IMG/VR virus record: IMGVR_UViG_3300032236_002285
Coordinates: 248,001-312,000 of that record
DNA: 64,000 bases
Direction: 5' to 3' (one strand)
Position 1 is the stretch's first letter. The number at the start of each line of letters is the position of its first letter. The notes under the pieces were generated by a model, which searched no databases, was not told the DNA's origin, and saw nothing but the letters and a program-made list of their open reading frames with translations. Made by a program: the position numbers and the translations under genes. Positions 7,781 to 24,210 of this stretch are shown here, one piece after another.

Positions 7781-7865
7781 TGGTAGGTACCCGAGCGGTC
7801 TTCAGGGACTAGTCTGATATACTAGGTGAGAAATCACGACGTGGGTTCAAATCCCACCCTACCAA
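7781..7865 (+). tRNA. tRNA-Ile(GAT) with long variable arm
   Basis: TGGTAGG/CCTACCA; CTAGT-CTGATAT-ACTAG; variable hairpin GTGA-GAAA-TCAC. Confidence 0.8.
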
Positions 7866-7871
7866 CAACAT

Positions 7872-7943
7872 TCACTGGTAGCTCAGAGGCAGAGCAACCG
7901 CCTGTTAAGCGGTAGGTCGGGATATCGTAATTCACCCAGTGAG
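7872..7943 (+). tRNA. tRNA-Asn(GTT), irregular T-arm
   Basis: TCACTGG/CCAGTGA, G73; CCGC-CTGTTAA-GCGG; T-stem poorly paired. Confidence 0.75.
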
Positions 7944-7949
7944 CAAAAC

Positions 7950-8028
7950 GCCTCAGTAGCCGAGGTCGCCTTCTAAGCGACTAATCGTAACGGAACTGAA
8001 AATGTAGGTTCGAATCCTACCTGGGGTA
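7950..8028 (+). tRNA. atypical tRNA-Arg(TCT): D-arm nearly absent, long variable region
   Basis: GCCTCAG/CTGGGGT; GTCGC-CTTCTAA-GCGAC; GTAGG-TTCGAAT-CCTAC. Confidence 0.65.
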
Positions 8029-8083
8029 CAAAAAAAAGGGACACTAGTCTTATTAATATATAAGTAAAATGTAGGTTTGTATT

Positions 8084-8914
8084 ATGTTAGACTTTGAAAA
8101 TATTCAAAAAGACTTTGAAAGTGGTCTTTTTTATCAAAAAGATATACTAATTAAGTATAGTATATCAATTAAAAAATTAAGAACTTTTGTAAAAAAAGGT
8201 TTATTGAATAAAGAAAATTGGAAATTAAAAAAATATGAAGTAAAAAGAGAAACAAAAAAGTTAATATCAGAAGGTAGAAAAAAATGGTTGAAAGAAAATA
8301 CATCTAAACATCCTTGGAGAAATGGAAATAAATCTAAGCCTTGTGAGGAGTTTAAGAAATTCTTAAAAAGTAGGAATATTTTCTTTTTGGAAGAGGTTAT
8401 GATTTCAAAAGAAAGATTCTATTCGGTTGATATTTTAATACCTGAGTTCACTTCGGTTGTAGAAATTAATGGTAATCAACATTATAAATCTAATGGAGAA
8501 CTTAAAGATTACTATAGTGAAAGAAATAGTTTTATAAAAAATAAAGGATGGTCGATATATGAAGTACACTACTCAATTGTTTATAATTTAGAAATGTGTG
8601 ATTCTATTTTAGAAAATATTAAAAATAATAATAAAATCGATATACCATTTTATATAAAAAATAAGAAAGAAAAAAAATATAAGAATAGGGAAGAGTACTG
8701 GAATAAAAGAAAAATTAATAAATTGAATAGTTATAGTGAAAGATTAAATGAATTAAAAAACAGTAGTATAGATTTTAAAAAGATTGGATGGGTTAAACTA
8801 GCATCTGAGATATTAAAAGTTAAAAATGTAAATAAACTATTAAAAGAAATCGATCCAGAATTTTATAAAAATTGTTATAAAAGAAAACAAAATGCCGAGG
8901 TGGTGGAATGGTAG
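8084..8914 (+). CDS. DUF559/Vsr-like PD-(D/E)XK homing endonuclease inserted in tRNA array
   Basis: FYSVDILIP..VVEINGNQHY..RNSFI..GWSIYEVHY; Lys-rich; last 21 nt overlap tRNA-Leu. Confidence 0.7.
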   Translation: MLDFENIQKDFESGLFYQKDILIKYSISIKKLRTFVKKGLLNKENWKLKKYEVKRETKKLISEGRKKWLKENTSKHPWRNGNKSKPCEEFKKFLKSRNIFFLEEVMISKERFYSVDILIPEFTSVVEINGNQHYKSNGELKDYYSERNSFIKNKGWSIYEVHYSIVYNLEMCDSILENIKNNNKIDIPFYIKNKKEKKYKNREEYWNKRKINKLNSYSERLNELKNSSIDFKKIGWVKLASEILKVKNVNKLLKEIDPEFYKNCYKRKQNAEVVEW

Positions 8915-8976
8915 ACACGCTAGCCTTAGAAGCTAGTACCCGCAAGGGTGTGTGGGTTCGAGTCCCACCCTCGGTA
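8894..8976 (+). tRNA. tRNA-Leu(TAG)
   Basis: GCCGAGG/CCTCGGT; CTAGC-CTTAGAA-GCTAG; type II variable arm. Confidence 0.9.
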
Positions 8977-9001
8977 CTGAAGTGAAACGAAAGTTCACTA
9001 C
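8977..9001 (+). repeat. 25-nt tRNA-Leu 3' trailer, copy 1
   Basis: CTGAAGTGAAACGAAAGTTCACTAC, identical to 9810-9834; GAAA-capped hairpin. Confidence 0.9.
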
Positions 9002-9010
9002 AAAAAAAAT

Positions 9011-9096
9011 TGATAGGTTGCCGTAGTGGCCGAACGGTCCGGACTGTTAATCCGGTGACGAATAGTCCATCGTGGGTTCGAATCCCACCCTGTCAG
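9011..9096 (+). tRNA. tRNA-Asn(GTT) with long variable region
   Basis: TGATAGG/CCTGTCA, G73; CCGGA-CTGTTAA-TCCGG. Confidence 0.8.
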
Positions 9097-9103
9097 CAAA
9101 TAT

Positions 9104-9175
9104 AGTCCTGTAGCTTAATGGGAAAGCGCTTGCCTTACATGCAAGAGAGAGTCGGATCGTTACCGACCAGGACTA
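9104..9175 (+). tRNA. tRNA-Val(TAC)
   Basis: AGTCCTG/CAGGACT; CTTGC-CTTACAT-GCAAG; T-loop ATCGTTA. Confidence 0.85.
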
Positions 9176-9181
9176 CAAAAT

Positions 9182-9255
9182 TGGACTGTAGCTCATTTGG
9201 TTAGAGCGCCACGCTGATACCGTGGAGGTGGTCGGATCGTAACCGACCAGTCCAA
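9182..9255 (+). tRNA. tRNA-Ile(GAT)
   Basis: TGGACTG/CAGTCCA; CCACG-CTGATAC-CGTGG; T-loop ATCGTAA. Confidence 0.85.
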
Positions 9256-9261
9256 CAACAA

Positions 9262-9345
9262 GGTACTATGGCCGAGTGGAGTCTTTAAGACGGGAGGCAG
9301 TGGTCTGCAAAACTTCTCACACTGGTTCGAATCCAGTTAGTACCT
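9262..9345 (+). tRNA. tRNA-Cys(GCA) with expanded D-loop
   Basis: GGTACTA/TAGTACC, U73; loop CTGCAAA; extra GTCT-TTA-AGAC hairpin in the D-loop. Confidence 0.75.
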
Positions 9346-9350
9346 CAAAC

Positions 9351-9422
9351 GCTTCTTAAGCATTAATGGTGATGCACTAGTCTTGTAAACTAGAGAAATC
9401 GGATCGTTACCGGTAAGAAGCT
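9351..9422 (+). tRNA. tRNA-Thr(TGT)
   Basis: GCTTCTT/AAGAAGC; CTAGT-CTTGTAA-ACTAG. Confidence 0.85.
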
Positions 9423-9428
9423 CTAAAT

Positions 9429-9500
9429 TGTTCTGTAGCTCAATGGTAGAGCGCTTCTGTGACATGGAAGAGGTAGTCGGATCGTTACCGACCAGGACAA
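9429..9500 (+). tRNA. tRNA-Val(GAC)
   Basis: TGTTCTG/CAGGACA; CTTCT-GTGACAT-GGAAG. Confidence 0.8.
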
Positions 9501-9525
9501 CAAAATAATGGATGGTGATTAAGAG

Positions 9526-9598
9526 TGTTACTTCGTGAAATGGTATACACATTTGTCTTAAAAACAAACTTTTGAGGGTTCAAGTCCCTCAGTAAAAT
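9526..9598 (+). tRNA. degenerate tRNA-Leu(TAA)-like element lacking the variable arm
   Basis: Leu-type D-arm GTGAAATGGTATACAC; TTTGT-CTTAAAA-ACAAA; GAGGG-TTCAAGT-CCCTC; acceptor stem has a mismatch. Confidence 0.55.
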
Positions 9599-9625
9599 CA
9601 CTCTTTGAACTTTCCTCCATTATAT

Positions 9626-9709
9626 GCCGATGTGGCTCAGTGGCGACAGCACTGGTTTTGTAAACCAGAGACGAATAGTCCAACGGGGGTTCGAGTCCCT
9701 CCATCGGCT
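9626..9709 (+). tRNA. tRNA-Thr(TGT) with long variable region
   Basis: GCCGATG/CATCGGC; CTGGT-TTTGTAA-ACCAG. Confidence 0.85.
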
Positions 9710-9724
9710 CAAAATAAATCACCT

Positions 9725-9809
9725 GCCTGGGTGGTGGAACGGTAGACACGCTGGACTTAAAATCCAGTGGGCAGTAATGCCCGTGAGGGTTCGAGTCCCT
9801 CTCCAGGTA
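9725..9809 (+). tRNA. tRNA-Leu(TAA)
   Basis: GCCTGGG/TCCAGGT; CTGGA-CTTAAAA-TCCAG; type II arm. Confidence 0.9.
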
Positions 9810-9834
9810 CTGAAGTGAAACGAAAGTTCACTAC
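9810..9834 (+). repeat. 25-nt tRNA-Leu 3' trailer, copy 2
   Basis: Identical to 8977-9001. Confidence 0.9.
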
Positions 9835-9840
9835 TAAATT

Positions 9841-9911
9841 ATTGGGATAGTTTAATGGTAAATCGTGGGCCTGATATGCCCGTGTTCTTGGTTCGATTCC
9901 AGGTCTCAATA
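9841..9911 (+). tRNA. tRNA-Ile(GAT)
   Basis: ATTGGGA/TCTCAAT; TGGGC-CTGATAT-GCCCG. Confidence 0.8.
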
Positions 9912-9916
9912 CAAAC

Positions 9917-9988
9917 TTCGATATGGCCTATTGGTAGGGTGCAGGGGGACATGTTCCTGAGGACTTGGTTCGATTCCAGGTATCGATA
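9917..9988 (+). tRNA. tRNA-like element, anticodon undetermined (8-nt loop GGACATGT)
   Basis: Acceptor, D- and T-arms present (CTTGG-TTCGATT-CCAGG); non-canonical anticodon loop. Confidence 0.5.
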
Positions 9989-9995
9989 CAAACAT

Positions 9996-10082
9996 CGCGG
10001 GGTAGAGTAGAGGTCAAACTCACTGGGCTCATAACCCAGGGTTGCGCAAGTGACACGTCAGGTTCGAATCCTGCCCCCGCTA
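9996..10082 (+). tRNA. initiator-type tRNA-Met(CAT) with long variable arm
   Basis: Unpaired C1:U72; three consecutive G-C pairs in CTGGG-CTCATAA-CCCAG; extra GTTGC-GCAA-GTGAC hairpin. Confidence 0.8.
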
Positions 10083-10088
10083 CAACAA

Positions 10089-10161
10089 GCAGTCATCGTA
10101 TAGTAGGTGATTACACCACCTTGGTACGGTGGAGATTCCGGTTCGAATCCGGGTGATTGCT
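10089..10161 (+). tRNA. tRNA-Thr(GGT)
   Basis: GCAGTCA/TGATTGC; CCACC-TTGGTAC-GGTGG. Confidence 0.85.
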
Positions 10162-10166
10162 CAAAT

Positions 10167-10247
10167 GCCCAGATGGTGGAATGGTATACACGCCAGTCTA
10201 AGAAGCTGGTTCCTTCGGGATTGAGAGTTCGAGTCTCTCTCTGGGCA
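10167..10247 (+). tRNA. tRNA-Leu(AAG)
   Basis: GCCCAGA/TCTGGGC; CCAGT-CTAAGAA-GCTGG; Leu-type D-arm and variable arm. Confidence 0.85.
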
Positions 10248-10255
10248 CAACATAC

Positions 10256-10340
10256 GCCGGTGTGATCCGATGTGGTAATGGAGTTCGGCTCATATCCGAA
10301 TTGGTTTATCCTATTGCTGGTTCGACTCCAGCCACCGGTA
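10256..10340 (+). tRNA. tRNA-CAT (elongator Met or lysidine Ile2), long variable region
   Basis: GCCGGTG/CACCGGT; TTCGG-CTCATAT-CCGAA. Confidence 0.75.
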
Positions 10341-10345
10341 CAAAT

Positions 10346-10426
10346 GTCAGAATGGTGGAATGGTATACACGCTAGTTTCAAAAACTAGTGCCGAAAGGTA
10401 TGAGAGTTCAAATCTCTCTTCTGATA
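10346..10426 (+). tRNA. tRNA-Leu(CAA)
   Basis: GTCAGAA/TTCTGAT; CTAGT-TTCAAAA-ACTAG. Confidence 0.88.
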
Positions 10427-10448
10427 CTCGATAAAATAAAAAATAAAA

Positions 10449-10730
10449 ATGGAAAAGATTATCGACATCGTTAGAGATAACGTTGCAAGATTCGACTGGG
10501 CTTCTGAAGGAGTCCTCTACTACAAAGTAGAAACTGAAAAATATATCTATCACTTCCCAGTAGATATGAATAACAAAGAAGATGTGGGAACAGCTAATTT
10601 TGAATCAGAACATAAGGCTATAAATCTTATGAGATATTTAAGAAAAGCATCAGAAAACTTAGAAAAAATTAAAAACGATTCAGGTACGCCTGATTGGAAA
10701 AAGACATTAAGAGTTACACAAAAAGTATGA
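10449..10730 (+). CDS. hypothetical phage protein
   Basis: 93-aa ORF; its TGA overlaps the LeuRS ATG (ATGA). Confidence 0.6.
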   Translation: MEKIIDIVRDNVARFDWASEGVLYYKVETEKYIYHFPVDMNNKEDVGTANFESEHKAINLMRYLRKASENLEKIKNDSGTPDWKKTLRVTQKV

Positions 10731-11992
10731 AAGATGAAAAGTATATATGCGTTATGTTTCCTTACCCAAGTGGTTCGGGATTGCATGTAGGTCACTTTTA
10801 TAATTATGCTATAATTGATTCTTATTGTAGATACTTTAAATACAAAGGTCAACAAGTTTTTCAACCTTTTGGTTATGATGCCTTTGGTTTGCCGGCTGAA
10901 AACTATGCTAGAAAAGTAGGTCGTGATGCTAAAGATGTTACCTATGAAAACATCAGTCAATTTAGAAAACAGATGGAAAAGATGGATACCAACTATCAAG
11001 AAATGTTGGTAACATCTGATCCTTCTTATCAAAAATGGACACAATGGTTGTTTTTGAAATTGAAAGAACATGGCTTGGCTTATAAAAAAGATGGTGAAGT
11101 AAATTGGTGTCCTTCTTGTGAAACCGTATTGGCTCGTGAACAAGTTAAATCTGATTGTTGTGAAAGATGTTCAACTAAGGTAGAAATGAAAACAATGAAT
11201 CAGTGGTACTTTAAGATTACTGATTATAAAGAACGTTTGATTAAAAACTTGGATTGGATAGATTATCCAAAATCAACTATTAACGCGCAAAGAATGTGGT
11301 TGGAAAACTTGCACGATTGGTGTGTTTCTCGTCAAAGAAAATGGGGCTGTCCAATTCCAATAGAAGGTGAAACCGATACAATGGATACATTTGTAGATTC
11401 TTCATTTTACTATGTTAGATATTGTGATGCTACTAATGATAATGAATTGTGTGCTAAAGATAAATATAAACAAGTAGATGTTTATGTTGGTGGTAATGAA
11501 CACGCTTGTATGCACTTGATTTATGCTCGTTTTATTAATATGTTTTTGTATGATATTGGTGTTGTTTCAGAGGAAGAACCATTTAAGAAAGTTATACATC
11601 AAGGTATAATTTTGAACGAAGGTGAAAAAATGTCTAAAACAAAAGGTAATGTTATTAATCCAGATGATTATGACTCTGATGAATTGAGATTTTATATGAT
11701 GTTTATTGGTCATTATTTTGATGGTGGTTCTTGGTCTGACCAAAATATAGCTGGTATTAAAAGATTTATTAGTCGTTTTAAGGAGTGGATGTCAAGAGAA
11801 GGTTCTGATACTTTTGATATTGAATCATTTAAGAAAAAAATATTTAACTACACTGAGAGTTTTAAGTTTAATAAAGTTGTTAGTGAGTTTATGACAATAG
11901 TTAATCAAAATAGAACTAAAAACATAACACCTGAGATAAAAAAAGAATTGATTGAATTGATTAAGGTGTATATGCCTGGAATTAAAATTTAA
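10727..11992 (+). CDS. leuS: minimal leucyl-tRNA synthetase lacking the CP1 editing domain
   Basis: MFPYPSGSGLHVGH (HIGH), FGYDAFGLPAENYA, DWCVSRQRKWG, ETDTMDTFVDSSFYY, EKMSKTKGN; about 421 aa; start moved to ATG 10727. Confidence 0.9.
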   Translation: MKDEKYICVMFPYPSGSGLHVGHFYNYAIIDSYCRYFKYKGQQVFQPFGYDAFGLPAENYARKVGRDAKDVTYENISQFRKQMEKMDTNYQEMLVTSDPSYQKWTQWLFLKLKEHGLAYKKDGEVNWCPSCETVLAREQVKSDCCERCSTKVEMKTMNQWYFKITDYKERLIKNLDWIDYPKSTINAQRMWLENLHDWCVSRQRKWGCPIPIEGETDTMDTFVDSSFYYVRYCDATNDNELCAKDKYKQVDVYVGGNEHACMHLIYARFINMFLYDIGVVSEEEPFKKVIHQGIILNEGEKMSKTKGNVINPDDYDSDELRFYMMFIGHYFDGGSWSDQNIAGIKRFISRFKEWMSREGSDTFDIESFKKKIFNYTESFKFNKVVSEFMTIVNQNRTKNITPEIKKELIELIKVYMPGIKI

Positions 11993-11995
11993 ATT

Positions 11996-12024
11996 AAAAA
12001 AGTCCTCTATTTTAGAGGACTTTT
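11996..12024. terminator. bidirectional intrinsic terminator
   Basis: AAAAGTCCTCT-atttt-AGAGGACTTTT. Confidence 0.75.
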
Positions 12025-12077
12025 AATTTATTTAAGATTTTAAATATACACAATAAATGTTTATCACTATCATATCT

Positions 12078-12347
12078 TTATTTATCAGCTATAGTTAGTT
12101 TTAATCTTATTGTTGTATTTTCATCTGTGATATTACCAGTAGTTACTCTAACACCTTTTACCCAAACTTCTGACTCATTTACTTTAAAAGCATTAGTAAG
12201 ATTTAATCTACTAATTGATTGAGTTAAAAAATCGGCTACTGATAAGTCAGTATCTAACTTCATATCAAATGAAGGTGATGGGTAAGAACTTTTATTGCTC
12301 TTTGAATCTACATAAGTAATATCTGATTTAACGTGAAATAGTTTCAT
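12078..12347 (-). CDS. hypothetical protein
   Basis: 89-aa ORF co-oriented with the upstream 743-aa gene. Confidence 0.55.
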   Translation of the reverse strand: MKLFHVKSDITYVDSKSNKSSYPSPSFDMKLDTDLSVADFLTQSISRLNLTNAFKVNESEVWVKGVRVTTGNITDENTTIRLKLTIADK

Positions 12348-12368
12348 ATTTATTTTTATTATTTTTTA

Positions 12369-14600: not shown

Positions 14601-14696
14601 AGTGATTAAAATTTTTTATTTTATAGATTATATATTAAAATACCAAATAAACATTTTACAATCTCAGTTTTTTTCCATAAATTTGTAATCTAATTA

Positions 14697-14834: not shown

Positions 14835-14866
14835 TAAATTTATATTAAAAAATAATATATATGGAC

Positions 14867-16486
14867 ATGAAATACATTAAAACTAGAAATAGATTTCTTG
14901 CTGAATCAAAAGGTGAAATGAGCGACAACGCTCTTCATACACTTGCGACTCATGATGATGGACAATCTCCTGATGTTCAAAAAAGTTTGGATGCACTTGA
15001 CGAGGTTTCTCCTAAAGGTAAAGTGGTAACTCGTTTTGCTCCTTCACCAACAGGATTTTTACATATCGGAGGTGTTCGTACAGCTCTTTACAACTACTTG
15101 TTTGCTAAAAAACACGGTGGTATCTTTTATGTTCGTATTGAAGATACTGACCAAAAACGTTTTGTAGGCGATGCTGAAAAATATATTCAAGACGCTTTAG
15201 AATGGTGTGGTATTGACCCAGATTATGCACCTTGGAAAGGTGGTCCTAATGGACCTTACCGCCAATCGGAAAGAGATTATTCTGGTCATATTCAAACTCT
15301 TTTAGATAAGGGTATGGCTTACTATGCTTTTGATACAGAAGATGATATGGTTAAAGTAAGAGCTGAAAATGCTCACTTTGCTTACGATACTAAAACTCGT
15401 ATGTCAATGAAGAACTCACTCTCTTTATCTAAAGAAGAAGTTGATGCACTTCTTGCTGCTAATACTCCATTTGTAATTCGCTTCAAAACACCAGAAAATA
15501 GAACTATCACCGTTAATGATGTAATTCGTGGTGAAGTTAGTTTGAATACAAATCAAACTGATGATAAAGTTTTGGTTAAATCAAATGGTATTCCTACATA
15601 TCATATGGCTAACGTATGTGACGACCACGATATGGGAACTACTCACGTTATTCGTGGTGAAGAATGGTTGCCTTCAACTCCACTTCACTTAATGTTATAT
15701 GAAGCATTTGGTTGGGAAGCTCCTACATTTGCTCACCTACCTCTAATTTTGAATCCTGATGGTAAAGGTAAGTTGTCTAAACGTAAAGCTTTAGCTTTAG
15801 GTATTCCAGCTTTCCCAATGGGTGGTGAAGGTGAAGATGATAAAGGTCAAAAAGTAAAGTATCTTGGTTTCAAAGATGAAGGTTTTGAACCACAAGCTAT
15901 GTTGAATTTCTTGGTGCTTTTAGGTTGGTCCCCAACAGATACTCAAGAACTTATGACTATGGCTGACATGATTTCTAAATTTGACTTAGCTCATGTTCAT
16001 AAGGCTGGTGCTCGTTTTGATGTTGAAAAAGCTAAACACTTTAATGCTCAACACTTGAACACTTATAGAAGTGATGAAGAAATTCTTTCACATATTGATA
16101 TGGGTGATACCTATCATTACTCACCAGAAAATCTTTCTAAGATTGTGGATATCTGTAAAAAGAGAGCAGTCTTTACTAAAGATTTACAAGCTGTTGCTGA
16201 TATCTTCTTTAAGCCAATTGTGATTAAAGAAACAGATGTTAAGTTATTAACTGATGATTACAAAAAAGTATTCTCAGTTTTTGTAACTAAGTCAATTGAT
16301 TGGACGGCTGAAACTATTAAACAAACAATTCACGACATTTGTCAAGAAATAGGTGTTAAAATGGGTAAGATAATGCCTGCTTTAAGATTGGCTATTGCTG
16401 GTGGATTACCAGGTCCAGATTTGGCAACAACAATGGAAATAATTGGTAGGGATGAAACCTTAATAAGAATTAAAAACACTTTATAA
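14867..16486 (+). CDS. gltX: glutamyl-tRNA synthetase with ~50-aa N-terminal extension carrying the capsid-targeting-like tag
   Basis: VVTRFAPSPTGFLHIGG, RIEDTD, HVIRGEEW, KLSKRK; starts MKYIKTRNRFLAES 5 nt after TAATATATA (14853-14861). Confidence 0.92.
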   Translation: MKYIKTRNRFLAESKGEMSDNALHTLATHDDGQSPDVQKSLDALDEVSPKGKVVTRFAPSPTGFLHIGGVRTALYNYLFAKKHGGIFYVRIEDTDQKRFVGDAEKYIQDALEWCGIDPDYAPWKGGPNGPYRQSERDYSGHIQTLLDKGMAYYAFDTEDDMVKVRAENAHFAYDTKTRMSMKNSLSLSKEEVDALLAANTPFVIRFKTPENRTITVNDVIRGEVSLNTNQTDDKVLVKSNGIPTYHMANVCDDHDMGTTHVIRGEEWLPSTPLHLMLYEAFGWEAPTFAHLPLILNPDGKGKLSKRKALALGIPAFPMGGEGEDDKGQKVKYLGFKDEGFEPQAMLNFLVLLGWSPTDTQELMTMADMISKFDLAHVHKAGARFDVEKAKHFNAQHLNTYRSDEEILSHIDMGDTYHYSPENLSKIVDICKKRAVFTKDLQAVADIFFKPIVIKETDVKLLTDDYKKVFSVFVTKSIDWTAETIKQTIHDICQEIGVKMGKIMPALRLAIAGGLPGPDLATTMEIIGRDETLIRIKNTL

Positions 16487-16517: not shown

Positions 16518-16518
16518 A

Positions 16519-18798: not shown

Positions 18799-18853
18799 GA
18801 CTTATATATTAAAAAAGCAATTCCGGATATTAATTAAAATAATTCTATATAAA

Positions 18854-18885
18854 TTTGGATATTGTGGATAAGTAATGTATATTTG
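18854..18885 (+). promoter_or_regulatory. Bacteroidota sigma70-type promoter
   Basis: TTTG (18854) - 20 nt - TATATTTG (18878-18885). Confidence 0.75.
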
Positions 18886-18910
18886 TATTTAGAAAAATCA
18901 TAACCCTAAA

Positions 18911-20146
18911 ATGATGAATATAAAAGACAAGTTTATTGAGTTAACAAGTAGAACATATCCTCACGGAACTGAGGAAGATGTTTTTCCTTTGTTAAACCCT
19001 GAACTACAAAAAGATGAGTTTAATAACCTTTTTATTAAAATTGGTGAAAGTGATGTTATGTTTACATCGCACTTAGATACTGCAACATCTGCACTTACCT
19101 CTGTTAGTCACGTTTTTGATGGTAACATAATTAAGACAGATGGTAAATCTATTTTAGGTGCTGATGATAAAGCAGGTGTTACTATTATGCTTTATATGAT
19201 TGAAAATAAAATCCCAGGACTTTATTACTTTTTCTTAGGTGAAGAAGTAGGTTGTATTGGTTCTAAGAAAGTTTCTAATAAATATAAAACTGAAAAACTT
19301 GAAGGTATCAATAAAGTAATTTCATTTGACCGTAGAGGTACCGACTCTGTTATTACTTTTCAATCTAGTCAAAGATGTTGCTCTGATAAATTTGGTGAAG
19401 AATTATCTAAACAATTAAATTTAGCAAATGATACTTTTTCATATAAGAATGACCCAACTGGTATCTTAACTGACTCTATTCAATTTATTAGCATTTATCC
19501 AGAGTGTACTAACATTTCTGTTGGTTATCGTTCAGAACACACATTTGCTGAACAACAAGATATTGAACACTTGACTAAATTAGCTGAGGCTTGTTTGAAA
19601 GTAGATTGGAATGGTTTACCTGTTGAAAGAGATCCTTCTAAAACTGAATACAAATCATACGGTGGTTACGGTGGATATGGTTGGAGTGATTGGGATGATT
19701 ATGACTACGGTTATAAAACAACTACCAATAACACTTCAAAGTGGAATTGGAATAAAAATGTAACACCAAAGACTGATAAAATTTGGTTCCACGATAAGAA
19801 ATATAACTATGTTTCTAATGTAGAACTTGATTCTTTAACTAAAAAAGTTATATCAGTTGATTTGTGTAAAGAACGTGTTGAGTATGAAAAGATGATAGTT
19901 GAAGATTTATTAATGTCATTGGATTTAAGTTATAAAGATTTTACTTGGGATGGTTTTAAGTTGAAAGTATTCTATAAGCAAAATGCTGGTGACCACACAA
20001 CAGAGTGTGATCGTAATGACTTGTTAGAATATTTACCTGAACTTGACTATTCAAATGGTGATGATTTAGGTGATTATAAGAGTAACACAAATGAATTTGA
20101 TGATTTTACTGATTCTTCAGAATTTAATTACTCAGAATTTGACTAA
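18911..20146 (+). CDS. M28/M20-family zinc peptidase
   Basis: FTSHLDT, ILGADDKAG, FFLGEEVGCIGS, ISFDRRG metal-binding motifs. Confidence 0.8.
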   Translation: MMNIKDKFIELTSRTYPHGTEEDVFPLLNPELQKDEFNNLFIKIGESDVMFTSHLDTATSALTSVSHVFDGNIIKTDGKSILGADDKAGVTIMLYMIENKIPGLYYFFLGEEVGCIGSKKVSNKYKTEKLEGINKVISFDRRGTDSVITFQSSQRCCSDKFGEELSKQLNLANDTFSYKNDPTGILTDSIQFISIYPECTNISVGYRSEHTFAEQQDIEHLTKLAEACLKVDWNGLPVERDPSKTEYKSYGGYGGYGWSDWDDYDYGYKTTTNNTSKWNWNKNVTPKTDKIWFHDKKYNYVSNVELDSLTKKVISVDLCKERVEYEKMIVEDLLMSLDLSYKDFTWDGFKLKVFYKQNAGDHTTECDRNDLLEYLPELDYSNGDDLGDYKSNTNEFDDFTDSSEFNYSEFD

Positions 20147-20185
20147 TAAAGAGCCAGAAAACTGGCTCTTTTTAAATATTATATT

Positions 20186-20635
20186 ATGAAAACAATAGCA
20201 ATCTACGCTGGAAGTTTTAACCCATTTCACATCGGACATCTTAATATAGTTGAGAAAGCCGAAAAAATATTTGGTAGTGGTAATGTTGTTATCGCTATAG
20301 GAGTTAACCCAGAAAAGCCAAAATCTGATATTGAAATCAGATGTCAAGAAATCAGTAAAAAGATTAATCGTCAAGTTATTTACTATACTAAATTTCTTCA
20401 TGAACTAATTGAAGATTATGAAAAATCTGGTTATAGTGTTGTACTTATAAGAGGTTTAAGAAATGGTGACGACTTAGCTTATGAAGATAACCAACTTAAA
20501 TTTATCAATGATTTCAAAAAAGATATCAATGTTGTTTTCTTTCGCTGTGATGAAGAATTTAAACACATTAGTTCTTCTGCTATTAGAAATCTACAATCTT
20601 TCCGACCAGGTTCCGGTGATAAATATTTAGTATAA
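20186..20635 (+). CDS. coaD: pantetheine-phosphate adenylyltransferase
   Basis: AIYAGSFNPFHIGH, LIRGLRNGDDLAYE, ISSSAIR. Confidence 0.8.
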   Translation: MKTIAIYAGSFNPFHIGHLNIVEKAEKIFGSGNVVIAIGVNPEKPKSDIEIRCQEISKKINRQVIYYTKFLHELIEDYEKSGYSVVLIRGLRNGDDLAYEDNQLKFINDFKKDINVVFFRCDEEFKHISSSAIRNLQSFRPGSGDKYLV

Positions 20636-20883
20636 TGAGGGATATTGAGGGTAGATATTTATCTGATAATGAAATTGAAGCAATTAATTCTTATTTATTA
20701 CAAAATGGTTGCTCAACTATTAATGGCACACCAAATATAACAAATATACACTTTACTAATGGTTTTTATAAAACCGAATTTTCAGAGGCTAACAAAGCAA
20801 CATTAAGTTACCTTGAAGTACCTGAAAACTGGGTTAAGTCATTTATAAGAGATAAGAAAATAAATAAAATAATAAATGGATAA
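20635..20883 (+). CDS. hypothetical protein with C-terminal RDKKINKI motif
   Basis: Translationally coupled to neighbours; shared C-terminal motif. Confidence 0.55.
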   Translation: MRDIEGRYLSDNEIEAINSYLLQNGCSTINGTPNITNIHFTNGFYKTEFSEANKATLSYLEVPENWVKSFIRDKKINKIING

Positions 20884-21286
20884 GCAAAGATACTTCAATG
20901 TAATAAAAAACTATAAGAAAATGTGTTCAAACCTTATAGCAAGTATTTCATCATATAATTGGTCTGACGAATTTTGTAGAAAAGAAGTTAAAGAACTTTA
21001 TGCAAAACTAATTAAAGAATTTGAAAATGTTGACTTCACTCAATTCACACTTGAAGAACTAAAGCAACTTGATTTTAATATGTTGGATGATGATACAATC
21101 TTAATGCCAGTTTGGGCAATTGATTGTTTACCAGATGGTGCTATTGTAATGAGTATTAATGGTGATGAAATCACTTTTGATAAATCTAAAGGTTTAGATA
21201 AAGATGTAAGATTTGGATGTACCGCCTATGGATTTTCTAAATCTCAATTAAGAGATTCTGCTATTGAGCAAGTTTTAGGTAAGTAG
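20876..21286 (+). CDS. hypothetical protein with C-terminal RDSAIEQVL motif
   Basis: Operon position; shared C-terminal motif. Confidence 0.6.
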   Translation: MDKQRYFNVIKNYKKMCSNLIASISSYNWSDEFCRKEVKELYAKLIKEFENVDFTQFTLEELKQLDFNMLDDDTILMPVWAIDCLPDGAIVMSINGDEITFDKSKGLDKDVRFGCTAYGFSKSQLRDSAIEQVLGK

Positions 21287-21287
21287 T

Positions 21288-21692
21288 ATGAAAGAAGTAG
21301 AATTGCTAAAATTAGGGTACATAGTACATGCCGTTAGACAAGATAAAAAAAATCTTATAATGGTTGCTTTCAATGGTGGTCCATTATTTGACTATTATAT
21401 TTCAATTTTAACTAGTCAATGTGATGATTACGAATATCTAAAAACTGATAAGTCTATTATTGGTGGTATAAATTTAAACTTGATGAATCGAAAAGATTTA
21501 GAAACATTCAAGTGTGTACCAGATGATAATCCAATTGTAGGTAAAAACTTTACAGTAAATAATCATTATTGGAGTACATCAGAAGTTAAAAAGATAATAA
21601 ATAATAATATTATAATAACTAAAAACTCAGTCTATGCCATTCATGATATTTCTGAGTTAAGAGATAAAAAAATAAATGATTTAGGTATATGA
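21288..21692 (+). CDS. hypothetical protein with C-terminal RDKKINDLGI motif
   Basis: Operon position; shared C-terminal motif. Confidence 0.6.
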   Translation: MKEVELLKLGYIVHAVRQDKKNLIMVAFNGGPLFDYYISILTSQCDDYEYLKTDKSIIGGINLNLMNRKDLETFKCVPDDNPIVGKNFTVNNHYWSTSEVKKIINNNIIITKNSVYAIHDISELRDKKINDLGI

Positions 21693-22243
21693 TTAATTAT
21701 ATTCCAACAAATAGAAACAATCCAAGATTAGCAAATGTAGGTAGTGCTTGGGGTAATATTCCTACAATAATAAAAGACATAATTGATAGGTTTAATTTAA
21801 AACAAGATTTAGCTCTTGAATTTGGCGTTGAGTATGGTTATTCAACTTCAGCGTTAGCTAACTATTTTAATAATGTAATTGGTGTTGATACTTTTGAAGG
21901 AGATCCACACTCTGGATTTAAAATAAATCATCTTGAAACAACTACTGAAAATCTTAAAGATTTTAGTAATATTCAATTAGTTAAATCAGATTACAGAGAT
22001 TATATTAAAGATAATAATAATATGTATGATATGATTCATATTGATATTATACACACTTACAATGAAACATTTGAATGCGGTGAGTGGGCAATAAATCACT
22101 CAAAGTGTGTTGTTTTTCATGATACACTTTCATTTTATGAAATAATGAGAGTTTGTGAAGATCTATCAGCAAAACACAACCTTGATTTTTACAATTATGA
22201 GGAATCTTATGGTTTAGGTATTTTAATTAATAATAATCTATAA
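21689..22243 (+). CDS. class I SAM-dependent methyltransferase (Methyltransf_24-like)
   Basis: ALEFGVEYGYST, IGVDTF, YDMIHIDIIHTY, VVFHD. Confidence 0.8.
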   Translation: MINYIPTNRNNPRLANVGSAWGNIPTIIKDIIDRFNLKQDLALEFGVEYGYSTSALANYFNNVIGVDTFEGDPHSGFKINHLETTTENLKDFSNIQLVKSDYRDYIKDNNNMYDMIHIDIIHTYNETFECGEWAINHSKCVVFHDTLSFYEIMRVCEDLSAKHNLDFYNYEESYGLGILINNNL

Positions 22244-22310
22244 ACTAAATAAAGAATAAAAGTATAACAAATGGCAATAATGCCATAATTAAAAATAAAC
22301 AAGAATAAAA

Positions 22311-22502
22311 ATGAAAACAGGAACAGTAAAGTTCTACAATGAGGCTAAAGGATTTGGTTTCATCACAGACGAAAACGGAACTGACGTGTTTGTACACGCT
22401 ACAGGACTAAAAGATGAAATCAGAGAAAATGATTCAGTTAGCTTTGAAGTAACAGAAGGTAAAAAAGGATTAAATGCAATTAATGTAACAGTTAATGCTT
22501 AA
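22311..22502 (+). CDS. cspA: cold-shock protein
   Basis: GTVKFYNEAKGFGFI..DVFVH (RNP1/RNP2). Confidence 0.95.
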   Translation: MKTGTVKFYNEAKGFGFITDENGTDVFVHATGLKDEIRENDSVSFEVTEGKKGLNAINVTVNA

Positions 22503-22521
22503 TATATTTTTAGTACTAATT

Positions 22522-22551
22522 AAAACCCTTAGATTTATCTGAGGGTTTTTT
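22522..22551 (+). terminator. intrinsic terminator
   Basis: AAAACCCTTAGA-ttta-TCTGAGGGTTTTTT. Confidence 0.8.
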
Positions 22552-22576
22552 GTTTATAAAAATTAATATATAATGT

Positions 22577-22951
22577 ATGAAATATTTACAAACAATAAAC
22601 GAATATCAAAGAACTGTAGGTTTTAGATATTCTGAACCAAAAGAAAAATATAAAGTATCTTTATTATGTAAAGGTCAAGATATCAATGAAGATAAGATAA
22701 ATGAAGGTTTATCAAAAGTTAGTGAATTGACTTATGACTCAAAGTCTATTGAAGTAAATTTACTTGATGAAGGTATGATTGCTGAACTACCAGAAATTGG
22801 ATCTGTAGAGATTAGCGCAATTGTTAGTTTTAATGTAACTCTTTACAATGAGAAAGAAGTAAATGGTGTTGTTAGTGAATTAGGTCAAAAGTTATCAAAA
22901 TTTGATATTGAAATATTAGATTTTAAATCAAAAGAAAATTTGGAAGATTAA
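22577..22951 (+). CDS. hypothetical protein, MKYLQTINEY tag family
   Basis: Late motif at 22564-22572; N-terminal tag. Confidence 0.6.
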   Translation: MKYLQTINEYQRTVGFRYSEPKEKYKVSLLCKGQDINEDKINEGLSKVSELTYDSKSIEVNLLDEGMIAELPEIGSVEISAIVSFNVTLYNEKEVNGVVSELGQKLSKFDIEILDFKSKENLED

Positions 22952-23086
22952 AATATTATTTCTATCTTTGTATTCACAAAACAAAAAAGAATTAAAAAAA
23001 AATTAAAAAAATATTTGACAAATTAAAACTTTGTTGTATATTTGTATAAAATAAGAACAAAAGGAACAAAAACTTTTTAATATATA
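22939..23086 (+). promoter_or_regulatory. promoter block of tRNA operon 2: two sigma70-type promoters and a late motif
   Basis: TTTG22939/TATCTTTG22963; TTTG23014/TATATTTG23037; TAATATATA 23078-23086; homologous to 7441-7504. Confidence 0.75.
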
Positions 23087-23091
23087 CAGAA

Positions 23092-23190
23092 ATGAAAAAC
23101 TTAAACTTAAATATCGTTAACCCTCAACCGCAAGTTGTAATCGATCAGGATCCTGGTTCGAAAGGGGCTAACTATGTGGTTTTAAGTTAA
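23092..23190 (+). CDS. attenuator leader peptide 2, MKNLNLNIVNPQPQVVIDQDPGSKGANYVVLS
   Basis: ATG 5 nt after the late motif; TAA at 23188-23190; Pro/Gln/Asp-rich core. Confidence 0.6.
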   Translation: MKNLNLNIVNPQPQVVIDQDPGSKGANYVVLS

Positions 23191-23213
23191 AGATATTATA
23201 ACTATGAAACATT

Positions 23214-23246
23214 ACCCAGTTAGTCGAAAGATTAACTGGGTTTTTT
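23214..23246 (+). terminator. attenuator terminator upstream of the Asp/Pro tRNA block
   Basis: ACCCAGTTAGTC-gaaa-GATTAACTGGGT plus T-run; 23166-23173 GGCTAACT can pair with 23218-23225. Confidence 0.85.
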
Positions 23247-23257
23247 GTTTTAGATAC

Positions 23258-23329
23258 AGTCCGTGGGTATGTTGGTATGAATAACCTCCTGTCACGGGGA
23301 AGAAGCCGGTTCGATTCCGGTACGGACTG
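23258..23329 (+). tRNA. tRNA-Asp(GTC)
   Basis: AGTCCGT/ACGGACT, G73; loop CTGTCAC. Confidence 0.85.
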
Positions 23330-23334
23330 CAAAA

Positions 23335-23408
23335 CGAGAAGTGACTAAGGTTTTAAGCACGCGCCGTCTGGAGCGGTGAGTTAGCAGGTTCGATTCCTGT
23401 CTTCTCGA
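23335..23408 (+). tRNA. tRNA-Pro(TGG)-like with atypical anticodon loop
   Basis: C1:G72 and A73 (CGAGAAG/CTTCTCG-A); CGCCG-TCTGGAG-CGGTG has C33 and A37. Confidence 0.6.
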
Positions 23409-23471
23409 CAACAAGTAGCTTTTGAGGCGAAAAATACTCTTTAGAGAATAGAGTAAAACAATTCTCAAAAT

Positions 23472-23544
23472 GGTCTCGTGGTTGAATGGTTACAATACCA
23501 CCCTGTCACGGTGCGAGATGCCGGTTCGATTCCGGTCGAGACCG
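23472..23544 (+). tRNA. tRNA-Asp(GTC)
   Basis: GGTCTCG/CGAGACC, G73; loop CTGTCAC. Confidence 0.9.
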
Positions 23545-23549
23545 CAAAA

Positions 23550-23620
23550 GGACATATAGCTTAAAAGGAAAGAGTACCTCCAGTGGGAGGGGAGTCTTGG
23601 TTCAAGTCCAGGTATGTCCG
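23550..23620 (+). tRNA. tRNA-like element, anticodon undetermined (shortened loop)
   Basis: GGACATA/TATGTCC, G73; D- and T-arms intact; CCTCC-AGTG-GGAGG. Confidence 0.5.
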
Positions 23621-23626
23621 CAAAAA

Positions 23627-23698
23627 GGTCTATTAGGGTAGTGGTTATCCTTCCCGACTGTCTATCGGGAGACACCGGTTCGAATCCGGTATAGACCG
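23627..23698 (+). tRNA. tRNA-Asp(GTC)
   Basis: GGTCTAT/ATAGACC; CCCGA-CTGTCTA-TCGGG. Confidence 0.88.
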
Positions 23699-23745
23699 CA
23701 AATGGGCTTTTCAAGACAAAAAGTTTGTAGATTACTTAATGAAAC

Positions 23746-23820
23746 GGTCTAGTGGTGAAGTGGCTATCATATCTGCCTGTCACGCAGAAGTAGAGGGATC
23801 GAAACCCTTCTAGACCGCCA
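23746..23820 (+). tRNA. tRNA-Asp(GTC), CCA encoded
   Basis: GGTCTAG/CTAGACC-GCCA; TCTGC-CTGTCAC-GCAGA. Confidence 0.9.
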
Positions 23821-23826
23821 AAAATT

Positions 23827-23901
23827 CGGGGTGTAGCGTAGTCCGGTTATCGCGCATGCTTTGGGAGCATGAAATCGTAGGTTCGAATCCTGCCACCCCG
23901 A
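23827..23901 (+). tRNA. tRNA-Pro(TGG)
   Basis: CGGGGTG/CACCCCG-A; CATGC-TTTGGGA-GCATG. Confidence 0.92.
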
Positions 23902-23932
23902 CAAAGAAACAAAATATTAATAAATAGAAATT

Positions 23933-23986
23933 ATGAGAACAACAACACAATACCAGCAACAACAACAAATTAATCCAACGGATTGA
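23933..23986 (+). CDS. attenuator leader peptide 3, MRTTTQYQQQQQINPTD
   Basis: Six Gln codons (CAA x5, CAG x1) in 17; TGA lies inside segment 2 of a 1:2/2:3/3:4 hairpin set. Confidence 0.85.
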   Translation: MRTTTQYQQQQQINPTD

Positions 23987-24014
23987 TAACGGTATCGTAT
24001 TGTCTAAACTTTAC

Positions 24015-24048
24015 AAACCCTATTCAATCTGATTGAGTAGGGTTTTTT
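24015..24048 (+). terminator. attenuator terminator upstream of tRNA-Gln x3 and glnS
   Basis: AAACCCTATTCAA-tctga-TTGAGTAGGGTTT plus T-run, ending 2 nt before tRNA-Gln. Confidence 0.88.
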
Positions 24049-24050
24049 AT

Positions 24051-24121
24051 TGTCTGATGGTGTAGTGGTAGCACAAGGGTCTTTGATCCCCTTAGTTCAG
24101 GTCCGATTCCTGATCAGACAA
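24051..24121 (+). tRNA. tRNA-Gln(TTG)
   Basis: TGTCTGA/TCAGACA; loop CTTTGAT; T-loop TCCGATT. Confidence 0.8.
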
Positions 24122-24128
24122 CAAATAT

Positions 24129-24210
24129 TGAGGAATAGAATAATGGCAGTTCACCCGCCTTTGAAGCGGAGAGAGAAATCTCAGTGTAGGTTCGAGTCCT
24201 ACTTCCTCAA
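24129..24210 (+). tRNA. tRNA-Gln(TTG) with long variable arm
   Basis: TGAGGAA/TTCCTCA; CCGC-CTTTGAA-GCGG; GAGA-GAAA-TCTC arm. Confidence 0.82.

Follow-up and report, generated by a model that had tools for sequence, protein, structure and literature searches.

Bacterial tRNAs fall into two architectural classes, with the extra hairpin arm in the variable region normally seen only in tRNAs for Leu, Ser and Tyr, yet several systems are known in which body class and amino-acid identity come apart. The allo-tRNAs and selC* tRNAs of bacteria combine a long variable arm with anticodons outside the Ser/Leu/Tyr set (Mukai et al. 2017, PMC5389517), nematode nev-tRNAs place anticodons of class I amino acids on class II bodies (PMC3333845), and the type I tRNA-Leu of Streptomyces has lost the arm from a class II identity (PMC6614811). 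Phages, meanwhile, encode structurally altered duplicates of host isoacceptors that defeat tRNA-cutting defences. The PARIS nuclease AriB cuts Lys-UUU, Thr-UGU and Asn-GUU at positions 40/41 in the anticodon stem, next to the variable region, and contacts the D-loop (PMC12409363); a bacterial Schlafen cuts Lys-UUU, Met-CAU and Ile-CAU in the anticodon arm (PMC13056530); and the variable loop of phage SP15 tRNA-Tyr is required to beat Retron-Eco7 (PMC12673091). Here we examine a 476-kb phage genome (97% complete) carrying ten tRNAs with class I identities (Lys, Asn, Thr, Ile, Met, Gln and Glu) and class-II-like variable arms, an association for which we found no published description.

An initial annotation, made from a 64,000-nt stretch of this genome (hereafter the window), had reported six such tRNAs, several with clean hairpins and most beside a normal copy of the same isoacceptor. 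That observation holds, and extends further than was reported. ARAGORN and Rfam RF00005 both call all six genes on the plus strand, with Rfam scores well above the gathering score of 29 bits over model positions 1-71 (Table 1). Their variable regions are 15-18 nt, above the 10-nt minimum for a long-arm tRNA, and five of the six form hairpins of 3-5 bp, the exception being the CAT tRNA at 10256. Normal-length siblings lie nearby for Asn, Ile, Thr and Gln, whereas the normal initiator lies outside the window. The annotation missed four further long class I tRNAs elsewhere in the genome (Lys-UUU twice, Lys-CUU and Glu-UUC), as well as the occurrence of similar tRNAs in many unrelated phages.

Table 1. 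Long-arm tRNAs, normal-length tRNAs and synthetase genes in the window (positions are those of the window).
Position	Strand	Feature	Length	Rfam bits	Variable region	Details
7781-7866	+	tRNA-Ile(GAU), long arm	86 nt	51.3	7826-7840	GTGA-GAAA-TCAC plus GAC; D-arm CCCGAGCGGT... and acceptor TGGTAGG resemble tRNA-Tyr; A73
9011-9097	+	tRNA-Asn(GUU), long arm	87 nt	45.1	9056-9071	GAC-GAATA-GTC plus CATC; U1-A72 and G73, as in normal tRNA-Asn
9626-9710	+	tRNA-Thr(UGU), long arm	85 nt	60.5	9669-9684	Same GAC-GAATA-GTC hairpin as the Asn tRNA; G1-C72; U73; 3-bp D-stem
9996-10082	+	Initiator-type tRNA-Met(CAU), long arm		45.0	10040-10057	GTTGC-GCAA-GTGAC (two G.U pairs); C1xU72 mismatch; three G-C pairs at the base of the anticodon stem; A73
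10256-10341	+	tRNA with anticodon CAU (Met, or Ile2 if lysidinylated)	86 nt	41.6	10301-10315	15 nt, no clean hairpin; a similar D-loop (GATGTGGTAAT) is seen in viral locus L116
24129-24211	+	tRNA-Gln(UUG), long arm	83 nt	55.5	24171-24185	GAGA-GAAA-TCTC plus AGT; U1-A72; flanked by two normal tRNA-Gln genes and followed by a phage GlnRS gene
7698-7770	+	tRNA-Asn(GUU), normal length
9182-9256	+	tRNA-Ile(GAU), normal length
9841-9912		tRNA-Ile, second normal copy
9351-9423	+	tRNA-Thr(UGU), normal length
24051-24122	+	tRNA-Gln(UUG), normal length
24217-24289		tRNA-Gln, second normal copy
9526-9599		Short 'Leu' tRNA
24308-25911	+	Phage glutaminyl-tRNA synthetase				tRNA-synt_1c plus both GlnRS-type anticodon-binding domains; directly after the three tRNA-Gln genes; the listed ORF starts at TTG 24250 inside the last tRNA, so ATG 24308 is the likely start
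14861-16486	+	Phage glutamyl-tRNA synthetase				tRNA-synt_1c plus Anticodon_2
10694-11992	+	Class I synthetase core, LeuRS-like	432 aa			Best match bacterial LeuRS (399 bits, below the family cut-off of 548), about half its length; directly after the tRNA array

We next asked whether the arms are more than chance insertions. In 147 non-redundant long class-I-identity tRNAs, drawn from the viral loci of our first scan, two related phage loci and this genome, 70% have a hairpin of at least 3 bp against 38 +/- 3.6% in shuffled sequences (z of about 9), and 36% against 12% have one of at least 4 bp; among them are 69 distinct stems, and 40 of 103 loops are GNRA. Two related published huge phages (LR745206 and LR756502) keep orthologous copies whose stems differ by compensatory changes: Lys shows GAGA/TCTC against TACC/GGTA, and GAC/GTC against GAG/CTC against GGAT/ATCC; Gln shows GAGA/TCTC against GCC/GGC against GAAT/ATTC; and Glu shows CATC/GATG against CAC/GTG. 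The long tRNA-Asn has its ortholog in LR745206. The hairpin itself is not always kept, however, since some orthologs have an unstructured 12-nt variable region instead (the LR756502 Thr, and 12 of 85 long Lys).

The same architecture recurs well beyond this lineage. Scans of viral contigs found at least 82 true long tRNA-Lys(UUU) in 117 pattern hits, plus long Asn, Cys, Trp, Thr, Met, Gly and Ile, whereas 120 cellular pattern hits yielded only 11 long tRNA-Lys(UUU), ten of them in loci with 7-31 tRNAs. Cultured phages carry such tRNAs too, namely phiCbK, CcrBL9, the phiKZ-like phage PA1C and E. coli phage Bas26, and long-arm Asn and Lys tRNAs occur in 110-320 kb cultured phages of E. coli, Pseudomonas and Caulobacter. 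At the D-arm the picture is mixed: a class-II-type arm, with a 3-bp stem and enlarged loop, is clear in the long Ile and Thr tRNAs and in the Lys and Glu tRNAs outside the window, while the long Asn has an enlarged D-loop but is drawn with a 4-bp stem, and the long Gln and the initiator keep a 4-bp class-I-like D-arm. Across the class, the nearest D-arm is a Ser or Tyr D-arm for 31% of long class-I tRNAs, against 3.6% of short controls.

Identity marks follow the anticodon. Long Asn has G73 in 9/9 and U1-A72 in 8/9, long Cys has U73 in 8/8, Trp G73 in 5/5, Gly U73 in 3/3, Thr G1-C72 in 6/6 and Lys A73 in 70/88; in discriminator base and 1:72 pair the long forms match the short forms of the same anticodon family in this genome and in the viral loci compared. 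Together these patterns suggest that the tRNAs are functional phage tRNAs keeping the identity given by their anticodon (Ile, Asn, Thr, fMet, Met or Ile2, and Gln, with three Lys and one Glu outside the window), each kept beside a normal-shaped copy and built on a class II body resembling bacterial tRNA-Tyr, with a variable arm of 0-1 nt, a 3-5 bp stem, usually a GNRA tetraloop and 3-4 unpaired nt, often with a class-II-type D-arm. In this view they belong to a widespread, mainly viral class, and the extra arm, projecting from the junction of the anticodon stem, D-arm and T-arm, would make the phage copy a poor substrate for host defence nucleases that dock on the anticodon stem and elbow of class I tRNAs, while the anticodon, discriminator and acceptor stem would still allow charging, mostly by host synthetases, and use on the ribosome, as for Leu/Ser/Tyr tRNAs.

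The genes, their helices, the conservation with compensatory changes, the cognate identity marks and the viral enrichment are established by our analysis; expression, charging and, above all, nuclease resistance are inferred. We put the probability that these are functional cognate tRNAs with a selected extra arm at about 0.8, that nuclease evasion is the selective reason at about 0.35-0.4, and that the whole reading is correct at about 0.45. The only evidence from RNA libraries consists of contigs from a metatranscriptome that may contain DNA, and evasion rests on analogy with the PARIS, Schlafen and Retron-Eco7 work. The set of long-arm identities is broad (Cys, Trp, Gly, Pro and Ile-UAU as well), so that overlap with known nuclease targets is weak evidence, and in an anticodon-blind scan Lys is not dominant (4 of 17). 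A long arm can itself be a target, since Septu and Retron-Eco7 cut the tRNA-Tyr variable arm (PMC13096335, PMC12673091), and the Asp (4 copies), Gly, Val and Phe tRNAs of this phage have no long version although their codons are heavily used.

The interpretation offered in the initial annotation, that structurally diversified copies may evade host tRNases or be read only by phage synthetases, is supported in part: its structural reading of class I identities on class-II-like bodies is right, and evasion is also the explanation we rank first, but exclusive reading by phage enzymes is not supported as a general rule. It is true that GlnRS lies directly after the tRNA-Gln trio, that the GluRS and LeuRS-like genes lie beside the arrays, and that long Gln and Glu tRNAs exist. 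Yet Pfam and NCBIfam searches of the genome found only GlnRS, GluRS, the LeuRS-like protein and a HisRS fragment, with no match for a Lys, Asn, Thr or Ile enzyme; these searches included no separate one for MetRS, so that a dedicated MetRS is not excluded, though the one class I ORF fits LeuRS better. The GlnRS has the normal length and domains, with nothing extra to grip an arm, normal-shaped Gln and Glu copies sit beside the long ones, and the same kind of long-arm tRNA-Asn occurs in a 114-kb E. coli K-12 phage, a record left out of the synthetase searches. We regard orthogonal pairs as unlikely. Somewhat less unlikely is the possibility that the arms are tolerated, nearly neutral insertions, the variable region being one of the few places a tRNA can grow, spread without selected function by gene conversion among neighbouring genes in phage arrays. 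The identical 13-nt arm in the long Asn and Thr tRNAs suggests copying between genes, arm sequence and length change fast between relatives, one ortholog lacks the hairpin, and about 30% of long variable regions have no hairpin of at least 3 bp. Weighing against neutrality are the compensatory stem changes, the strong enrichment of hairpins and GNRA loops over shuffles, the co-adapted D-arm, the recurrence of the architecture in phages of very different hosts and genome sizes, and its rarity in cellular genomes, which have the same opportunity.

It is also unlikely, on present evidence, that these are non-translational decoys or inhibitors soaking up tRNA-targeting nucleases, including those that recognize the tRNA-Tyr-type arm, such as PtuAB of Septu and Retron-Eco7. 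The arm geometry does match tRNA-Tyr, and overexpressed phage tRNA can blunt PtuAB and possibly AriB (PMC12673091, PMC12409363), but a decoy would not need the full sets of cognate identity marks and the intact anticodon loops with U33 and purine 37, and the initiator copy keeps its initiator-specific features. Least likely of all is that they are Ser, Leu or Tyr tRNAs with altered anticodons that deliberately mistranslate, like allo-tRNAs or nematode nev-tRNAs. Bacterial SerRS and LeuRS ignore the anticodon, A73 plus hinge features suffice for E. coli LeuRS (PMC9976931), and several long forms have A73; however, the tRNAs lack the identity sets of Ser (G73, long 6-7 bp arm), Leu (A73 plus Leu-type D-loop) or Tyr (A73, G1-C72, GUA), their discriminators and first pairs following the anticodon instead. 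Their 3-5 bp stems are shorter than the 6-7 bp of this phage's tRNA-Ser arms, none shares the invariant D-arm of its five long tRNA-Leu, and the acceptor/T arrangement is 7/5, not 8/4 or 9/3. A further-reaching possibility, less likely than not but one for which the data leave room, is that phages have repeatedly moved class I identities (Lys, Asn, Thr, Ile, Met, Gln, Glu, Cys, Trp and Gly) onto a tRNA-Tyr-like class II body, perhaps through single-step anticodon and discriminator switches (GUA to GUU to UUU, and so on), and keep these copies as a nuclease-proof spare set. This would constitute an unrecognized viral tRNA class and a new counter-defence principle, a change of overall shape rather than point mutations at the cleavage site.

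Among described systems, the known phage anti-defence tRNAs (T5 tRNA-Lys/Thr/Asn against PARIS, and SP15/T5 tRNA-Tyr against Retron-Eco7) share with these tRNAs their status as phage-encoded duplicates of host isoacceptors that differ structurally, and the whole PARIS target set has long-arm copies in this phage. The known cases, however, rely on point substitutions or on a resized arm in a tRNA that already has one; T5's own Lys and Asn tRNAs are normal length, and the addition of a whole arm to class I tRNAs has not been reported in the papers we could search. Allo-tRNAs likewise combine a long variable arm with anticodons outside Ser/Leu/Tyr and are found in metagenomes, sometimes in polycistronic arrays, but they are bacterial, are often linked to toxin-antitoxin genes, and have 8/4 or 9/3 acceptor/T branches, long anticodon stems and mostly serine identity (G73 or U73); the tRNAs described here are viral and have cognate identity marks, with a 7-bp acceptor, 5-bp T-stem and 5-bp anticodon stem in the ARAGORN structures. 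Nev-tRNAs are eukaryotic and decode an alternative code for leucine, whereas here the identity marks argue for cognate charging. The Streptomyces type I tRNA-Leu represents the opposite change, although this phage and many viral loci also hold short 'Leu' tRNAs. There is also a close resemblance to bacterial class II tRNAs, especially tRNA-Tyr: the variable arm has the same layout as this phage's own tRNA-Tyr genes (3 bp, tetraloop, 3 unpaired nt), a layout that E. coli tRNA-Tyr also has, many long-arm tRNAs carry the CCCGAGCGG-type D-arm with a 3-bp stem, and the acceptor/T arrangement is likewise 7/5, while the anticodons, discriminators and first base pairs are those of Lys, Asn, Thr, Ile, Met, Gln and Glu (and elsewhere Cys, Trp and Gly), not of Tyr, Ser or Leu.

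ARAGORN identified 27 tRNA genes in the window and Rfam 29, all on the + strand and gathered in two arrays at 7.7-10.4 kb and 23.3-24.3 kb. The six genes singled out in the initial annotation as class I identities with extended variable regions are real and lie where they had been placed, with Rfam scores of 41.6-60.5 bits against a cut-off of 29. When each cloverleaf was split into its parts, the variable regions proved to be 15-18 nt long; five of the six form a 3-5 bp stem capped by GAAA, GCAA or GAATA and followed by 3-4 unpaired bases, while the CAT tRNA at 10256 has the extra length but no clean hairpin. Asn-long and Thr-long carry the same 13-nt arm, and the initiator copy keeps a 1:72 mismatch and three G-C pairs in the anticodon stem. 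Normal-length copies of Asn, Ile, Thr and Gln lie within a few hundred bases.

Coordinates of the long-arm tRNAs and of other features discussed in the text (window positions unless stated)
Feature	Coordinates	Strand	Length	Variable region
Ile-GAT, long arm	7781-7866	+	86 nt	7826-7840
Asn-GTT, long arm	9011-9097	+	87 nt	9056-9071
Thr-TGT, long arm	9626-9710	+	85 nt	9669-9684
Initiator-type CAT, long arm	9996-10082	+	87 nt	10040-10057
CAT, long variable region	10256-10341	+	86 nt	10301-10315
Gln-TTG, long arm	24129-24211	+	83 nt	24171-24185
Short 'tRNA-Leu(UAA)'	9526-9599 (with flanks 9519-9606)		74 nt	5 nt
tRNA-like gene, Cys (GCA) anticodon loop	9262-9345
Arg(UCU)-type tRNA	7950-8028; L001 (locus) 3229-3318			22-23 nt
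Normal-length tRNAs with altered T-loops	9104-9501, 7872-7943; genome 218721-218879
tRNA with 8-nt anticodon loop	9917-9989
tRNA with 6-nt anticodon loop	23550-23621
CHU_C-domain protein	1565-4501	-	978 aa
Toprim ORF	4984-5577
ORF splitting the tRNA array	8084-8914		276 aa
LeuRS-like core	10694-11992		432 aa
GluRS	14861-16486
GlnRS	about 24308-25911
HNH endonuclease	L120 (Lys/His array locus of this genome) 576-1118
HisRS N-terminal fragment	L120 1834-2466 (genome 220433-221065)		210 aa
Long-arm tRNA-Ile(UAU), viral locus L054	8593-8686 of L054
Long-arm tRNA-Ile(UAU), viral locus L102	11562-11656 of L102
Long-arm tRNA-Ile(UAU), viral locus L112	4462-4555 of L112

The phenomenon extends beyond these six genes. 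The window is bases 248001-312000 of a 476,236-bp virus record with 29.9% G+C, estimated to be 97% complete, and the whole genome contains 53 tRNAs by ARAGORN (59 by Rfam), ten of which combine a class I anticodon with a long arm; the four outside the window are Lys-UUU (two), Lys-CUU and Glu-UUC. Nearly every tRNA gene in the genome is followed by C after the discriminator, but only five of 53 encode the full CCA, and the tRNAs therefore depend on a CCA-adding enzyme. The nearest public genomes are two uncultured huge phages, LR745206 (634,780 bp) and LR756502 (642,428 bp), which are about 78% identical across the tRNA array. Both keep the three long Lys genes and a long Gln, and one or the other also keeps long Asn, Arg-UCU, Glu and Thr.

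We next asked whether the arms are selected helices. Between the three phages the arm stems differ but stay complementary: Lys shows GAGA/TCTC against TACC/GGTA in one case and GAC/GTC against GAG/CTC against GGAT/ATCC in another, Gln shows GAGA/TCTC against GCC/GGC against GAAT/ATTC, and Glu shows CATC/GATG against CAC/GTG. A MAFFT alignment of 33 long tRNA-Lys misaligned the variable arms, and selecting only foldable sequences would have been circular, so we relied on this ortholog comparison and on an unselected shuffle test rather than on a covariance model. In an unselected set of 147 non-redundant long class-I-identity tRNAs, drawn from the viral loci of the first scan, the two related phage loci and this genome, 70% have a hairpin of at least 3 bp near the 5' edge of the variable region, against 38 +/- 3.6% after shuffling; for hairpins of at least 4 bp the figures are 36% against 12 +/- 2.4%. 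This set contains 69 different stem sequences, and 40 of 103 loops are GNRA. Together these patterns indicate that the arms are selected helices.

A long arm on a non-Ser/Leu/Tyr anticodon could mean mischarging, as in allo-tRNAs or nev-tRNAs, but the marks that synthetases read argue otherwise. Long Asn tRNAs have G73 in 9 of 9 and U1-A72 in 8 of 9, long Cys have U73 in 8 of 8, long Trp have G73 in 5 of 5, long Gly have U73 in 3 of 3, long Thr have G1-C72 in 6 of 6, and long Lys have A73 in 70 of 88; in each case this matches the short tRNAs of the same anticodon family, and in this phage the long and normal siblings share discriminators. The acceptor/T branch is 7/5, not 8/4 or 9/3, the stems are shorter than the 6-7 bp of this phage's Ser arms, and none has the invariant D-arm of its five long Leu tRNAs. 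The roles of these marks are established and are summarized in PMC9976931; that the tRNAs are charged accordingly is inferred from sequence alone.

The body of these tRNAs resembles tRNA-Tyr. The arm layout equals that of this phage's own two tRNA-Tyr genes, and Ile-long shares 6 of 7 acceptor bases and the CCCGAGCGG-type D-arm with one of them. Across the wider set, the closest D-arm of a long class-I tRNA is a Ser or Tyr D-arm in 31% of cases, against 3.6% for short controls. The anticodons involved (GUA, GUU, UUU, CUU, UGU, UUG, UUC, GAU, CAU) are linked by single substitutions, and for most of these synthetases the anticodon is the main identity element, so an origin by identity switching of a Tyr-like gene is possible. 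Whole-body similarity within the genome (65-80%), however, is too weak to prove this or to settle whether the long forms descend from tRNA-Tyr or from their own isoacceptors. Codon usage explains tRNA copy number but not which families have a long copy.

To examine how widely such tRNAs occur, we searched IMG/VR with a pattern for tRNA-Lys(UUU) with 20-27 nt between the anticodon loop and the T-arm. At least 82 true long-arm tRNA-Lys(UUU) came from the 117 stretches returned, on contigs of 5 kb to 619 kb, and their flanks held long Asn, Cys, Trp, Thr, Met, Gly, Pro and Ile-UAU tRNAs. An anticodon-blind pattern (GAAA loop plus a common T-arm) returned 93 distinct tRNAs, of which 17 had class I anticodons. 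Among 1386 non-seed class-I tRNAs in these arrays, 88 (6.3%) were long; by identity the counts were Ile-UAU 15/35, Cys 11/50, Trp 7/51, Gly-UCC 8/62, Asn 10/82 and Thr-UGU 7/62. The three long-arm tRNA-Ile(UAU) genes that we read, in viral loci L054, L102 and L112, share a variable-arm hairpin with the conserved loop CCAGATTAG, which contains GAU in an anticodon-loop-like setting, raising the possibility that it is a pseudo-anticodon for IleRS. By contrast, the same Lys pattern in one genome per prokaryotic species gave only 11 true cases in 120 stretches, ten of them in loci with 7-31 tRNAs, which look like phage or mobile tRNA arrays. For the Lys pattern both scans, of viruses and of prokaryotes, were partial, so these values are proportions and not frequencies. 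Cultured phages also carry such genes, annotated plainly: Caulobacter phiCbK has Lys-CUU and Lys-UUU (annotated 88 and 91 nt), CcrBL9 has Lys-CUU (87 nt), the phiKZ-like Pseudomonas phage PA1C and relatives have Asn (87 nt), and Escherichia phage GreteKellenberger (Bas26) and, by the BLAST span, many related Salmonella and E. coli phages have Asn (83 nt). BLAST had led us to suspect a long-armed tRNA-Asn in T5 itself, but its Lys and Asn tRNAs are normal, the hits being Epseptimavirus relatives such as Bas26.

Other tRNAs of this phage are also structurally unusual. In the reverse case, a 'tRNA-Leu(UAA)' with a short variable loop, a G2.A71 mismatch and U73 is embedded in a longer stem formed by the complementary flanks AAGAGTG/CACTCTT; short Leu tRNAs are frequent in the viral loci (45 of 134 non-seed Leu), and the half-length LeuRS-like gene follows this array. 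A tRNA-like gene missed by both ARAGORN and Rfam has a 7-bp acceptor, a normal T-arm, an anticodon loop CTGCAAA (Cys, GCA) and U73, but an extra hairpin (GTCT-TTA-AGAC) inside the D-loop, a structural embellishment at a second site; the gap between Ile and Thr in which it lies is conserved in relatives. An Arg(UCU)-type tRNA of unclear structure (Rfam 36.6 bits), conserved in LR745206, has a much reduced D-arm and a variable region containing GTAACGGAA. Several normal-length tRNAs (Val-UAC, Ile-GAU, Thr-UGU, Val-GAC, a third Asn, Phe, His) have T-loops ATCGTTA or ATCGTAA, in which position 54 is A and position 58 is U, the reverse of the usual T54-A58 pair. Two further tRNAs have abnormal anticodon loops of 8 nt (ggacatgt) and 6 nt (cagtgg) and cannot be assigned by ARAGORN.

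We then examined the protein-coding genes around the arrays. The genome encodes a GlnRS directly after the Gln trio, a GluRS, a LeuRS-like core directly after the first array, and a HisRS fragment next to the Lys cluster, whereas in Pfam and NCBIfam searches of this 97%-complete genome no match to a Lys, Asn, Thr or Ile enzyme turned up; most long-arm tRNAs must therefore rely on host enzymes. The LeuRS-like protein, a class I synthetase, first looked like MetRS, but NCBIfam fits bacterial LeuRS much better. The class II synthetase hit beside the Lys tRNAs is not LysRS or AsnRS: it matches only the N-terminal third of HisRS (158 bits to TIGR00442, positions 2-147 of 406) and may be a fragment or one piece of a split gene. 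A Toprim ORF, considered as a possible AriB- or RNase M5-like tRNase, matches the DnaG primase Toprim region only, and the idea was rejected. The ORF that splits the tRNA array has no Pfam or NCBIfam match, and related DNA in a public run joins 8033 to 8889 without it (98 other letters lie between); it looks like a mobile insertion, possibly a homing endonuclease, and an HNH endonuclease also sits in the Lys/His array. A protein ending in a CHU_C type IX secretion sorting domain, a Bacteroidota feature, hints at a Bacteroidota host.

Among assembled contigs of public runs, one metatranscriptome library holds contigs 90-99% like the array, covering Ile-long (7788-7868; 2 differences, no gaps) and Thr-long with the arm present. 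This shows close relatives in nature and no arm-less form, although it is not proof of transcription.

Several unrelated defence nucleases hit just these kinds of tRNA. PARIS AriB nicks Lys-UUU, Thr-UGU and Asn-GUU between positions 40 and 41, its second subunit reads the D-loop, and T5 escapes through substitutions (PMC12409363); a bacterial Schlafen cuts Lys-UUU, Met-CAU and Ile-CAU in the anticodon arm (PMC13056530); and for tRNA-Tyr, the longer variable loop of the SP15 phage copy is required to defeat Retron-Eco7 (PMC12673091). A long arm leaves the tRNA between the 3' strand of the anticodon stem and the T-stem, beside the D-arm, which is where such enzymes must sit, and ribosomes and EF-Tu already accept class II tRNAs. 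We therefore rank steric escape from host tRNases first, with the normal sibling kept as a second, differently shaped copy. Whereas the genes, their helices and their identity marks are read directly from the sequences, this escape is an inference, as are expression and cognate charging. Against it, long arms can themselves be cut (Septu, PMC13096335), the list of long-arm identities is broad, and some orthologs have no hairpin. The rival explanations, which we place below it, are neutral spread of arms by gene conversion, private pairing with phage synthetases, a decoy function, and deliberate mischarging. The interpretation offered in the initial annotation, that such copies may evade host tRNases or be read only by phage synthetases, is thus supported only in part.

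If the arm blocks defence nucleases, it would explain why phages carry duplicate isoacceptors, and it would add a structural escape route to the tRNA arms race (PARIS, PrrC, Schlafen, Septu/retrons). The class also bears on how class II synthetases such as LysRS and AsnRS tolerate an arm on the side they face, and it offers natural scaffolds for engineered tRNAs carrying variable-arm tags. These ideas are directly testable, because cultured phages of E. coli, Pseudomonas and Caulobacter carry such genes. The genes are already in GenBank under ordinary names, and annotation pipelines should flag them rather than silently name them.

Full-text literature searches, which included reviews of non-canonical tRNAs and of tRNA identity, found allo-tRNAs, nev-tRNAs, type I tRNA-Leu, known from Streptomyces (PMC6614811), and anti-defence phage tRNAs; in the incomplete literature searched, none of the papers described 7/5 class-I-identity tRNAs with long arms in phages. 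Textbooks and recent reviews limit long variable arms in bacteria to Leu, Ser, Tyr and Sec (PMC7609411, PMC9976931). By contrast, the tRNAs analysed here form a coherent class that breaks this rule while apparently keeping normal identity, and that is concentrated in viruses.
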